A stretch of DNA of 63,524 bases, the filler included, from Olpidium bornovanus S191 (lineage: Eukaryota; Fungi; Olpidiomycota), in NCBI GenBank assembly GCA_017911155.1. It is 30 parts of 30 records of this genome, joined end to end, with 100 filler letters (N's around TTAATTAATTAA, not from the genome) between each part and the next. Parts side by side here need not be neighbours in the genome. Positions count along the whole stretch, not along the records: positions 27,693 to 30,525 come from JAEFCI010003852.1; 29 more parts are not named here. One strand, given 5' to 3'. Below, piece after piece: positions 26,099 to 30,525 of this stretch. Below the pieces are notes generated by a model. The model made no database searches and was not told where the DNA came from. It saw only the letters and a program-made list of their open reading frames with translations. Numbering within the stretch: position 1 is the first letter of the stretch; every line of letters begins with the position of its first letter. A program made the translations under genes and the position numbers.

Positions 26099-28554
26099 CC
26101 CCTTCCGAAACCCGTGGCCAGGGAACAAGAAATTTTTTTTTTTCCGGTTAATACTTCCGGCGTTAAAAGATCTGTTTCGTCCAGCCGAGCGCAGAAACCC
26201 CGCGCGCGGGGGGAAGGGTTTCCGGGGAGGGGCGTGGGCCGACTCCCGCCGTCGTTTCTCAGGAACGGACGACGAAGTCTTCCCAGCTCGCGGCCCGCAT
26301 TCCCGGCGAAATATGCGCGATGAGCGCCTCCGCGCGGCGGCCCCCCCCCCCGTGCAGACCTCCCGAGCGGCTCACGCCCGCCGCATCGAAGCGCGCATTC
26401 TGCGACGGCCGCAGGACTCGGGATGGGGGAAAGGAAGGAAGGGGGGGGGGGNNNNNNNNNNNNNNNNNNNNNNNNNNNNNNNNNNNNNNNNNNNNTTAAT
26501 TAATTAANNNNNNNNNNNNNNNNNNNNNNNNNNNNNNNNNNNNNNNNNNNNCATGAGCTAGGAAGGCGAATAAAACGCCAGGGCTAGGACGCCGAAACTG
26601 GGGCGAGAAGCGCGTTATCCTCGTAAAATTTCAGCCGGATGATGCACATCTCAAAAAACCTGTCTGAGGTATACGGTTTCCGTTAAGCTTGTAAAAGGGA
26701 AATGTCTCTCTGACAATTCATTTTAATTTTCATTGGTCTATTCTTAAGGACGGTCTCTTTCCAGGGTGCATCCACGGTGCTTTGGAGGAGAGTGCCCTAT
26801 CTGGTATGCCATCCGTTTGCGCTTCGAAAGGGGATAGGTTCCGTTGCGCTAAAGGAAGAAGGAAAAAAAAAAAGAATCCGGCAAATGCATCAGAATAAAG
26901 GAGAAGTAACAGAAAAAACTAAAGAAGAGAATCCGGCGAACTACGCCAATAAAAAAAAGGGAGAAAACCCGAGGGAACCCCGCAAATCCCGCAGAAAAAA
27001 AAAAAAGGAAGAAAGAAAGAGAGAAAGAGAGAGAGAGAGAGTTTCCCGCAAATCTGGCAAAAAAAAAAGAATCCCGGAAATCTCGCAAAAAAAAAAAAAA
27101 AAAAATTAATATCTCAGCAAAAAAAAAGAAACGCAGAGGAGAGAATTGCAAACGAAAAGAAGAGAGAATTGCACGAAACCCTCACACACCCCCTTCCCTC
27201 ACCAAAAAGAAAAGAAAAAAAAAGAGAAGATCTCGGGCCAAATAAAGAAGAAAAAAATAGTGAGAATCCCGCGCATCCCGCGAAAAGAAAGGAAAAAGGT
27301 TTTTCTTGCGAATCCAACCATAACATAAAAATAGAAAAAACGAGAAAAAAGAAAAGAATTCGAAAGAGAATAGCTTACTTAGCGGTTGGTCAGGGCACCT
27401 GAATTTTTGACGCCGTGGAATGTGAAGGAAGGAAGGAAAGGAGGAGGTCGAGGGAAGAGAAGCGCCGCGTGGTGCCCCTTTTTGCGGTCGACGGCGGGGG
27501 TGTGACGCCGGTTGTTGTGTGTGCCTCGCCAAACCCACTGGGCCGCTGCCTCCCAGCCGCGCATTTGCCGCGATTGCCCCACAAATACATGANNNNNNNN
27601 NNNNNNNNNNNNNNNNNNNNNNNNNNNNNNNNNNNNTTAATTAATTAANNNNNNNNNNNNNNNNNNNNNNNNNNNNNNNNNNNNNNNNNNNNATCAATAA
27701 TCTTCCGGCCGAAAGACGGACTCGCAGAACCTGTGAGCGCCCGCGATATGTCAGATCAAAAAAAAAAACTATTTACCGCGGATCGGACGTGGAAAAAATC
27801 TTGGCGAGCATGCGCATAAGGTAGTTTTTTTTTTTTTTTTCCTCTTTCCCCGCCTCCTTTCCCCCCCTCCCTCCTGTTTTTCCGTCCCCCTGACTTTTCC
27901 GCCTCTCCCTCTTCCCCTGCAGAGATACAAAAGGGAGAGGGAGGGGCCGGTCGACCCCCCCCCCCCCATCCTCCTCCCCTGGGCGCAACAGCGTCTTTTT
28001 CAGACCGCAGCAGCTAAAACAACCCTTTCCCCGCGAGTCCTCCCCCCCCCCCCCCCCCCCCCCCCCCCCGGGTGTTTTTTTTTTTTTTTTTTTCTTTTTC
28101 CCCCCCCCCCCTTCCCCCCCCCCCCCAACGCACCCGCACGAGGAACCCGCCCGCCGGTGGCGTGGCGGCTCGCGGAAACGACCGAGGACCGACGTCATCA
28201 AGAAGAACGTCATCAAGAAGAAGAGGAGGGGAACAACGGGGTCCCGCACGCCAGAAACACAGCAGCGTCCGCGGTTGCCCTTGCCTCGGGCTGCCGGCTT
28301 CGGCGGTAGTGGCTGACGACGAGCAGCCAGGAACAGTGGCTCCCGCCAAGGGCGCCCGCGGAGCGGGCGGAGGAGCCCTACTCCTCCCGCTGGCATTCCC
28401 GTCGCCGCCCTCGTCGCCGCCCTCGTCGCCGGCGCTCGATGACCGCCGCCTAGACGTCACCGGCGCGGCGGATCGAGGCTCGGCAAAGGAGTGCTGCGGC
28501 GACTCGGGGGGCGACGAATCCGCGCTGGGTGCCGCGAGGGCCCTCCTGAGCCGG

Positions 28555-30525
28555 ATGAAGCGGAAGCTGGGCCCTGCTTTTTACATCGTAACGTGGTTTC
28601 TCTTCTCGACGACGCTCATCTTCAGCAACCGATACATCCTGGTCGACCGGACGTTCCCCTTCCCGCTCTGCCTCACAACGTACCACCTGGGCATCGCGAC
28701 CGTCGCCACCAGGCTGCTGCGACGCTTCACCAACCTGATGCCCGCCGTCTCCGCGGCCGATAGCCGTCTCACCTGGGACAAATGGGCCCGCAGAGTGCTG
28801 CCGATCGGCGTTCTTTTCTCGCTGACGCTGGCATGCGGGAACTACGCTTGTACGTCGCCCGCGGTCCGCCTTGCGAACATAACCCCTGCTTGGACGCTTT
28901 TGTCCCCGCCCTACCCCTGACCGGAGGGTTGGGAGTGGTTGTGCCCGTGTTAACGTCGGGGCGACACCTATCGCAGATCTTTTTTTGTCCGTGGCATTCA
29001 TCCAGGTGCTCAAGTCTGGAACACCCGTGGCCATCCTGGTTGCCTCCTGGATCTTTGGTGTCGAAAAGCCGAACGCGTCCTTGTTCTTCAACATCGTCTT
29101 CATCGCCTTGGGCGTCGGCATCGCATCTGTCGGTCGTTACGCTTCGTGAATTCTCCACGAGCGCGTGAATTGCCTGGTTGCGCGATCACAAGACTTACGT
29201 GGGCCGCTGACATTTTCCCTCGTCCCGCACTCTGGCCCAACCCGCGTCGCAGTTTGGCGAAATCCGATTCGTCTTTGTCGGATTTGTGCTCATGGTCAGT
29301 GACGGCGAATTACACCCGGCTCTGAGGGTCCGCTACGCGGTCGATGGCCTCTTCGCTTATCCCGAACTGCTTTCTTCATAGCTGGCGGGGATTTCTTTCG
29401 ACGCCGTTCGATTGGTTATGATTCAGAAACTTTTGAAGAGCGAATCCATACAGATGGATTCTCTGACGACGCTGTACTACATCGCGCCGGTATCGGCCGT
29501 TTGCAGCATGCTGATCAGCATCATTTTAGAGTCCTCTTCGATGCACCTGGACAAGATCCTCAATGTCGGCCTCTGGCCTTTTTTTCTTAGCGGGATAGGT
29601 AGGTTCGTTTGGCATCAGCGTGGCAATTCGATATTTACTTTCACTGTTGCTTTATTTGCACGGATTGGGACCGGGCGGACGAGCCCCCCGCATATTGGCG
29701 AGTAGTCGTCGTGTGACGACCGCCAGCCTTACCCGTCATTCTCGTTTTGTGTACGGTGTAGTTTCCTTTGGCCTCAACGTGGCCGCTGTCTCTGTGGTGA
29801 AGAACACCTCCACGTTAACGCTTGGCCTGGCGGGCGTTCTGAAGGACATCCTCATCGTTGGCATGGCGATGCTGTTCTACGGCACGCCGATGACCTGGCT
29901 TCAGGCGTTCGGATACACCATGGCAATGACGGGACTGATGTATTACAAGAGTGGCAAAAACATCTTCGGGTTGTGCTCCGGCGGGTTCGCGAGATCGACA
30001 GCGCGCCATTGCCGCCGGTTCGCCCAAATTGGCCTGCTTTCAATGGTCGTCGCCTCGTGCGTGCTGCTGTACCGCATCAAGGACGAGGCTTGGTACTTCG
30101 ATCAGGCTGCGTCGTGCGCAAACAACATCGTGCAATTGGCAGTCGTTCAGGAGGCTCCCGTCGTCACGGCAATTCCGGAGGGCTTCCCGATTTCTGATAA
30201 AGTCGCCGTGATTGTTGAGCCGAGGACCCTGCCGTCGCTGGTCCCCCTGATAATGCATTTTGCCGGCGTGCTAGCTTGGGACTGGAACTGTTAAGTTTCT
30301 CGATGCCCCCGCCCGTCCAGTGTCGGCGTCTTGCGCGTTTTAGTCTGGTGATGCGGAGAGCAATCCTGCGATTTGACTGTCACTGAAATTCCGGGATTAT
30401 TGACTGATGTGTCCCGGATCGTCTATTCCGTACTAGTCCATATATTTTACAGCGATGCGAACAGCCGGATGTTATGGAACTCGATTCAGATTCGACGTTT
30501 GGTCGAAGTCGGAAAGCTGAACATG
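28555..30525 (+). CDS. Triose-phosphate/nucleotide-sugar transporter (TPT/SLC35 family) fused to a C-terminal DUF5672-like domain, partial
   Basis: FSTTLIFSNRYIL..FPFPLCLTTYHL, VLPIGVLFSLTLACGN, LKSGTPVAIL, FDAVRLVMIQKLL, LTTLYYIAPV, TSTLTLGLAGVLKDIL. The same exon then continues through an extra hydrophobic helix to KVAVIVEPRTLPSLVPLIMHFAGVLAWDWN|FHIFYSDANSRML..IRRLVEVGKLN. The frame is also open upstream of the ATG. Confidence 0.8.

Follow-up and report, generated by a model that had tools for sequence, protein, structure and literature searches.

The DNA analysed here (the window, 63,524 nucleotides including filler, from the Olpidium bornovanus S191 assembly GCA_017911155.1) holds at positions 27693-30525 an entire short contig of this metagenome-derived assembly (JAEFCI010003852.1, 2,833 nt), which carries the gene under study on its plus strand and no neighbouring gene. 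From the DNA, the list of open reading frames and exon-wise translation, six exons and five introns were delineated, all introns being of the GT..AG type (Table 1). The gene joins a transporter of the TPT/SLC35 type to the start of a domain of the DUF5672 family. In our reading, to which we assign a probability of about 0.75, one polypeptide combines a transporter of the GlfB/UgtA clade, an additional eleventh transmembrane helix (TM11) and a lumenal DUF5672 domain of GT-A fold that would use the imported sugar. Homology searches were run per exon or on the proteins of relatives, and the exons were kept separate throughout.

Table 1. Features of the transporter-DUF5672 gene, with positions counted along the whole window. 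dN/dS, ratio of nonsynonymous to synonymous substitution rates against the second Olpidium copy of the gene; X1 and X3, two sets of assembled RNA contigs.
Feature	Position	Strand	Evidence
Transcribed 5' leader, minimum extent	28140..28554	+	Spliced RNA contigs of both contig sets (X1 record 1, X3 record 5)
Exon 1: start codon and TPT helices 1-3	28555..28849	+	Pfam TPT profile 4-52; hydropathy; RNA joint 28849>28977
Exon 2: end of TPT helix 3 through helix 5	28977..29128	+	Pfam TPT profile 90-136; EamA; GT..AG RNA joints
Exon 3: 14 codons, start of helix 6	29253..29294	+	RNA joints 29128>29253 and 29293/4>29381/2; absent from deposited model P0001
Exon 4: TPT helices 6-8	29382..29598	+	RNA joints; alignment to Borealophlyctis P0004, residues 151-241; dN/dS 0.12 against the second copy
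Exon 5, part 1: end of TPT helix 8, helices 9 and 10, up to ...MYYK	29762..29949	+	Pfam TPT profile 233-290/291; dN/dS 0.008
Exon 5, basic linker: 22 codons, predicted cytosolic	29950..30015	+	K/R/H-rich; dN/dS 0.34
Exon 5, TM11: RFAQIGLLSMVVASCVLLYR	30016..30075	+	Hydropathy peak 2.35; dN/dS 0.35; helix at the same offset in GlfB/UgtA-type transporters and all fusions
Exon 5, stem: 39 codons	30076..30192	+	Least conserved segment, dN/dS 0.50; EGFP motif at its end
Exon 5, end: opening strand and opening helix of the DUF5672-type GT-A domain (SDKVAVIVEPR...LAWDWN)	30193..30289	+	Domain profile 6-37, 19 bits; dN/dS 0.12
Intron 5: 147 nt, phase 1, GT..AG	30290..30436	+	Joint 30289>30437 in both RNA contig sets
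Exon 6: second strand and second helix of the domain, truncated at the edge of the piece	30437..30525	+	RNA contigs extend 599-656 nt further; dN/dS 0.12

Both halves of the protein meet within exon 5 (29762-30289), whose whole codons span 29764-30288. A preliminary description of the locus had placed several peptides in one frame with neither a stop nor an intron at the junction, and all of them were recovered in frame in this exon: GYTMAMTGLMYYK at residues 50-62, FAQIGLLSMVVASCVLLY at residues 86-103 and KVAVIVEPR...LAWDWN at residues 146-175. From the last transporter helix to the new domain the frame contains no stop codon, and exon 6 reads F-HIFYSDANS...VGKLNM to the edge of the piece. 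The EGFP motif that terminates the stem is also found in the stand-alone DUF5672 protein P0110. The deposited protein of this locus (P0001, BJ554DRAFT_6519, 468 residues, named a partial hypothetical protein by NCBI) is 100% identical over exon 5. Elsewhere it is mis-spliced: parts of introns 1 and 2 are translated, exons 3 and 4 with helices 6-8 are missing, and the protein ends at a stop in intron 5. The deposited model of the fusion locus is wrong, and the RNA contigs presented below back the six-exon model. Upstream of 28555 the list of open reading frames showed no in-frame ATG inside the open frame that begins at 28072. The region 27760-28130 is composed of low-complexity sequence and long homopolymers of C, T and G/A (e.g. 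>25 C followed by >20 T near 28040-28095), which reflect either a promoter of low complexity or poor assembly.

Helices 1-10 of the transporter were assigned to exons 1-5, plus one extra helix, by per-exon hydropathy and by alignment to a full-length relative, the Borealophlyctis nickersoniae protein KAJ3284807.1 (P0004). Exon by exon, Pfam recognised TPT (PF03151) at the colinear profile positions 4-52, 90-136 and 233-290/291 (E 5e-4, 0.016 and 3e-6, respectively), the match in exon 5 covering residues 4-61 and ending at ...YYK. These scores each stay under the whole-protein cut-off because each exon represents a fragment; P0004 reached 94 bits over profile positions 4-290 and matched the solved plastid TPT structure 5Y78. 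A feature search of the ESM Atlas with exon 5 recognised the transporter part alone. Judged by its sequence, the N-terminal half qualifies as a canonical ten-helix transporter of the TPT/SLC35 type, for which antiport of nucleotide sugars is predicted.

In the hydropathy profile TM11 occupies residues 85-104 of exon 5 and begins 24 residues past ...MYY. The linker in front of it is rich in Lys and Arg and the flank behind it (RIKDE) carries acidic residues; among the relatives, for which charges were computed, the segment preceding TM11 has a net charge of +8 in P0004. Hydropathy and charge bias agree with the earlier proposal of ten TPT helices followed by one extra. By prediction, nucleotide-sugar transporters possess an even number of helices and cytosolic ends, with GlfB/UgtA as the sole exception, in which an extra helix was placed at 358-378 (PMC4630932). 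Stand-alone DUF5672 proteins are built as type II membrane proteins, in which an Arg-rich tail is followed by a single helix and then a stem. Given the known topology of nucleotide-sugar transporters and these type II relatives, the DUF5672 domain of the Olpidium protein is predicted to be lumenal.

The likeness to GlfB/UgtA extends beyond the helix count. P0004 is 45% identical to Aspergillus proteins named UDP-galactofuranose transporter by NCBI, and the alignment extends through TM11. In ascomycete stand-alone transporters (Aspergillus, Podospora, Cordyceps and others) an eleventh helix lies at +30 after helix 10 and is followed by about 23 residues, and in all fusions its offset is +19 to +35. 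GlfB-type transporters, DUF5672 fusions and fusions to another domain family, DUF3431, formed one clade (Shimodaira-Hasegawa-like approximate likelihood ratio test, SH-aLRT, 96) when 36 transporter domains were placed in a quick maximum-likelihood tree. Within this clade, the transporters of DUF5672 fusions grouped with two chytrid stand-alone proteins (SH-aLRT 100); a divergent environmental family of fusions (see below) sits on a very long branch, so that this grouping is tentative. The short tail behind the eleventh helix in Dikarya may be what is left of a lumenal domain since lost, or a forerunner of one.

The C-terminal half was characterized with a profile of the whole structural domain (A2) built from 48 homologues. 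Residues 144-175 of exon 5 matched positions 6-37 of this profile with 19 bits and include those that stand out in the A2 alignment, the invariant Glu together with the near-invariant Arg (both in AVIVEPR) and Trp (in WDW). The window holds the conserved first beta-alpha-beta-alpha of the DUF5672 structural domain. An exhaustive HMMER search with exon 5 yielded 362 relatives, nearly all of which matched the transporter part alone, and five that span the entire exon (P0001, P0002, P0003, P0004 and P0005).

One of these five, P0003, is encoded by a second Olpidium copy on contig JAEFCI010006315.1 (positions 273-2120 of that contig; 77% protein identity, synonymous divergence, dS, about 0.6). It scored 61.4 bits with the Pfam DUF5672 model (gathering cut-off 24.4). 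It has the same exon 5, the same phase-1 intron after ...WDW(H/N) and the same next exon (FHIFYSDANS...KLNMTLIPP...), and its last exon contains FQADS, YDYVGAPW, GNGGLSLR, EDVYF and FSVE before the stop at 2120. Its three exons are colinear on the A2 profile (6-37, 40-98 and 97-223), the last of them reaching 136 bits, and the domain of this copy is complete. The family motifs FQxDS, YDYVGAPW, GNGGLSLR, EDxYF and FSVE are thus all found in the second copy, and in the window copy they would fall past 30525; their presence there is inferred because of the length of the RNA contig and the 77%-identical copy. This second copy may represent a paralogue, or the metagenome may contain another Olpidium genome from which it stems. 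In another public run a fragment of 91% identity was detected (P0002). The deposited P0003 retains intron 5 and overruns its true stop into an unrelated region resembling CobW_C; this match was rejected as a gene-model artefact, since the domain of the second copy stops at 2120.

Transcription of the locus was assessed with two sets of assembled contigs (X1, X3) and two raw RNA runs (X21, X24), which were aligned to 28140-30525. The X1 and X3 contigs originate from different studies, dated 2025 and 2022, and neither is the source assembly. In both studies the contigs omit precisely the five introns (all GT..AG joints), and they are therefore derived from spliced RNA. A contig of 1,532 nt comprises exons 3-4-5-6 and continues for 656 nt past the edge of the piece, an extension compatible with about 480 nt of coding sequence still to come, as estimated by comparison with the second copy, plus a 3' untranslated region. 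Relative to the piece no insertions or deletions were seen in the RNA contigs between 28140 and 30525, and in exon 5 they differ from it by one synonymous change, T>C at position 30195. A copy of the transcript crossing the junction had been named as a check on the fusion; spliced RNA contigs from two studies supply it, and they cross the junction without insertion or deletion. The raw runs X21 and X24 contained zero reads at the locus, and the organism was probably absent from them.

Further observations were made on these RNA data. The contigs bear the label of a species whose own raw RNA runs are without the locus, and the run table shows partial matches to it in soil and root metagenomes and metatranscriptomes. 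This would agree with Olpidium transcripts present unnoticed in samples from the roots of a host plant. In X3 an unspliced minor contig (record 7, 30260-30466, with the differences 30347 G>C and 30365 C>T) runs across intron 5 alongside the spliced form. Its origin may lie in pre-mRNA, in retention of the intron or in a second allele; retention would end the protein at ...WDWNC.

Comparison of the two Olpidium copies revealed an in-frame indel of 2 codons in the linker. With dS of about 0.3-1.6 across segments, dN/dS is below 1 throughout (Table 1), and intron 5 is 62% identical between the copies as opposed to about 80% in the flanking exons. Therefore the whole frame, including the junction, is under purifying selection in both copies.

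The preliminary description had suggested that other fungi be searched for the same architecture, and this search was successful. The chytrid protein P0004 contains a full TPT, TM11 and a stem, followed by ...AVIIERDP...LGADWN. In the Borealophlyctis DNA LGADWN is followed by GTACGC...CACAG, after which the sequence resumes with F-RIFH and reaches the end of the contig, so that a phase-1 intron lies at the same codon as in Olpidium. The same layout is present in P0005, a fragment from an AT-rich metagenome. In addition, P0102 and about 14 relatives (506-768 residues; Logan, JGI and ENA assemblies) carry DUF5672, with E down to 1e-35, behind a multi-helix region that Pfam did not recognise in this family. 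By profile comparison this region is a divergent TPT over all ten helices (hhalign probability 99.8%, E 3e-30), and TM11 is present as well; the comparison resolved a PDB match of the family's transporter profile that was borderline by itself (a GDP-mannose transporter, E 0.09). The contig of P0102 is eukaryotic, and its first TPT exon lies upstream of an intron.

Taken together, the frame is continuous across the junction, spliced, transcribed and under purifying selection, and the fusion is real. The earlier statement that it is no artefact of a gene model holds, on the evidence of the RNA contigs, of the second Olpidium copy with dN/dS <1 and of the same architecture with the same intron site and phase in Borealophlyctis.

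Fusions of a second kind were found on the same transporter clade and include many of the closest transporters. DUF3431 (PF11913) follows the same helix in Irineochytrium annulatum (KAJ3143798.1), Gaertneriomyces semiglobifer, Dinochytrium kinnereticum and Chytridium lagenaria, as well as in the Pezizomycetes Ascobolus immersus, Ascodesmis nigricans and Geopyxis, and these fusions are annotated in several genomes. A model of DUF3431 (predicted local distance difference test, pLDDT, 92.4) gave weaker GT-A matches to SpsA, GfsA, ArnC and glycogenin (Foldseek E 1e-4, TM 0.3-0.4). In Geranomyces variabilis (KAJ3167415.1, P0092) TM11 is followed by about 360 residues forming a third domain with an ...IDDDVVF... 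motif, for which no Pfam or PDB sequence match was obtained. DUF3431 and DUF5672 also occur together in single proteins (P0158, P0161).

The fold of DUF5672 was tested on a representative of the family, the stand-alone protein of Oculimacula yallundae, modelled by AlphaFold2 with the A2 alignment, and not on the window protein itself. The model is an alpha/beta/alpha sandwich of high confidence (pLDDT 89.5, predicted template modelling score 0.90). Its best Foldseek matches were glycogenin (GT8), bacterial GT6 and UGGT (GT24), with probability 1.00 and E 1e-8 to 1e-6. VIA aligned about 190-225 residues at Z 11-13 with LARGE1, Kre2/Mnt1, GlyE, LgtC, GT6, B3GalT and a PBCV-1 glycosyltransferase, and glycosyltransferases filled all 50 of the VIA rows listed; their families are ones that we take to be of the GT-A fold. 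The GT-A fold proposed for this domain is borne out by the model of the family member and by its Foldseek and VIA matches. To call DUF5672 a putative glycosyltransferase is well founded as a statement on the modelled fold, with the activity remaining putative. Elsewhere, DUF5672 is fused to GT1, GT10 and GT17 domains.

From these elements the following working can be proposed. The transporter half would import an activated sugar in exchange for a nucleoside monophosphate, and the eleventh helix, which is general in the GlfB/UgtA clade, would return the chain across the membrane of the Golgi or endoplasmic reticulum, so that a short stem could present the GT-A-fold DUF5672 domain in the lumen. 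There the tethered domain might use the sugar at the exit of the pore on a glycan, glycoprotein or glycolipid, and the covalent link would provide co-localisation, a 1:1 stoichiometry and a short diffusion path. We infer the transferase activity, the functional coupling and the substrate channelling. As for the substrate, clade membership offers a first guess only, namely a UDP-sugar, possibly UDP-galactofuranose.

Several observations weigh against this reading. Pfam gave no match on the C-terminal fragments from the window, DUF5672 (PF18922) included, because its DUF5672 model starts at about ...LNMTLIP, roughly at the edge of the piece; of the earlier claim that the C-terminal part is the start of a DUF5672 protein, the domain assignment stands on the 19 bits of the domain profile and the 61 bits of the second copy, and the Pfam model itself misses the window. 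No more than about 60 residues of this domain fall within the piece, and the catalytic motifs of this copy lie past its edge. The domain profile found no match among PDB sequences; therefore it is the fold comparison alone that ties DUF5672 to glycosyltransferases. In place of the canonical DxD the family has the variant Q-x-D (Gln near-invariant, Asp invariant), located where GT-A enzymes have DxD, at the end of model strand 100-104 after the fourth strand; some GT-A enzymes are metal-independent, for example GT6 entry 4ayl according to its entry title. No assayed member of DUF5672 was found in the literature search. An identity of 45% to GlfB does not fix the sugar specificity, and the RNA evidence consists of assembled contigs, which are blind to transcript ends, to an internal start and to processing of the protein.

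A real fusion with another role is, in our view, unlikely. The lumenal domain might transfer sugar phosphates, hydrolyse the donor or act as a lectin-like or regulatory module, or the transporter might serve mainly as an anchor or targeting device. Such roles draw support from QxD in the place of DxD and from the lack of a PDB sequence link to any CAZy family, a shared fold showing no function in itself; moreover, one source names a relative 'related to MNN4', and Pfam no longer detects the much-altered transporter half of the divergent environmental family. Against such roles stand the canonical TPT of the Olpidium copies and the very strong purifying selection on it (dN/dS 0.008). The top structural matches of the lumenal domain are all nucleotide-sugar transferases, and DUF5672 is repeatedly fused to GT1, GT10 and GT17 domains. 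Three kinds of lumenal domain are found on the one clade as well, two of them GT-A-like and the third suspected to be so from its DDD motif.

That one gene yields two separate proteins, by cleavage in the linker or stem or by an internal start giving a stand-alone type II enzyme, appears quite improbable. Although linker and stem are the least constrained segments (dN/dS 0.34-0.50), contigs do not register internal transcript starts and both halves also occur on their own in other fungi, a transporter-only product lacks a stop unless intron 5 is retained, and exon 5 offers no suitable start codon ahead of TM11, the only ATG nearby sitting inside the helix, where it could not start a full signal anchor. 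That one frame has been preserved between distant organisms speaks for a product that is joined at least when it is synthesised.

We give hardly any weight to an artefact in which neighbouring genes for a transporter and a type II DUF5672 protein were joined by misassembly, a lost stop or read-through: the contig is short (2,833 nt), metagenome-derived and has long homopolymer runs at its 5' side, the deposited P0001 is wrong elsewhere and contigs across two genes would not prove one transcript, but there is no in-frame stop between the halves, RNA assemblies of two other studies show no indel, an ATG for a full signal anchor is missing (the sole one being inside the helix), and the open junction recurs in the second copy (with its in-frame 2-codon indel and dN/dS <1), in Borealophlyctis and in environmental relatives. 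Misassembly, two-gene read-through and a chance open frame were each rejected, the artefact being largely refuted by these observations.

The reading of a transporter joined to a lumenal domain that would use its cargo bears on several wider points. Direct donor supply to Golgi glycosyltransferases by a dedicated transporter is a long-running question that has so far been approached solely via weak non-covalent complexes. A natural single-chain fusion that occurs from Olpidium to chytrids provides a test object for channelling. It would also supply a functional context, lumenal nucleotide-sugar use, for the orphan families DUF5672 and DUF3431, and could explain in evolutionary terms why the Aspergillus UDP-galactofuranose transporters have their odd topology of 11 helices. 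More tentatively, and at slightly less than even odds, early-diverging fungi may possess a modular set of covalent transporter-transferases, in which an 11-helix platform of the GlfB type carries swappable lumenal GT-A-like domains (DUF5672, DUF3431 or the domain with the DDD motif), the tail of GlfB being the stump or the seed of such a domain. If true, each glycan-building step would be fed directly by its own donor pore, and the fusions would serve as Rosetta stones, placing DUF5672 and DUF3431 in a lumenal synthesis of glycans that depends on nucleotide sugars.

Full-text literature searches returned no natural fusion of a transporter to a glycosyltransferase and no reported function of DUF5672 or DUF3431, with one unrelated mention of DUF5672; a recent review of nucleotide-sugar delivery mentions engineered chimeras only. 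Both domain families are known, and the fusion is undescribed in the searched literature though already deposited: P0003 is listed in public protein sets with PF03151 and PF18922 under the automatic name 'GDP-mannose transporter'. The claim that no example of this fusion had been described is thus upheld by the literature searches, with the qualification that the architecture had been deposited unremarked and that the TPT-DUF3431 sister fusions are annotated, though likewise undescribed in the papers searched.

Among known systems, the GlfB/UgtA transporters of Aspergillus come closest to the transporter half, as they belong to the same TPT clade and have the same unusual eleventh helix about 24-30 residues past helix 10. 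They end about 23 residues after this helix, whereas the Olpidium protein continues into a whole GT-A-fold domain. From the other side, the stand-alone type II DUF5672 proteins of Ascomycota (Glarea lozoyensis EHL02042.1, Oculimacula yallundae) share the signal-anchor helix, the stem, the ...AVIVE.R... strand and the conserved motifs seen in the second Olpidium copy, but have a short cytosolic tail in place of the ten-helix transporter of Olpidium. The TPT-DUF3431 fusions lie on the same clade and follow the same order of transporter, basic linker, TM11, stem and lumenal domain; they differ in that the lumenal domain is DUF3431, whose resemblance to GT-A is weaker than that of DUF5672. Finally, transporters and glycosyltransferases of the Golgi form non-covalent assemblies, e.g. 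SLC35A3 with MGATs (PMC6453868), which likewise place the import of a donor beside the transferase that consumes it. In those assemblies separate polypeptides associate, whereas the Olpidium protein is one chain and needs the extra helix to reach the lumen.

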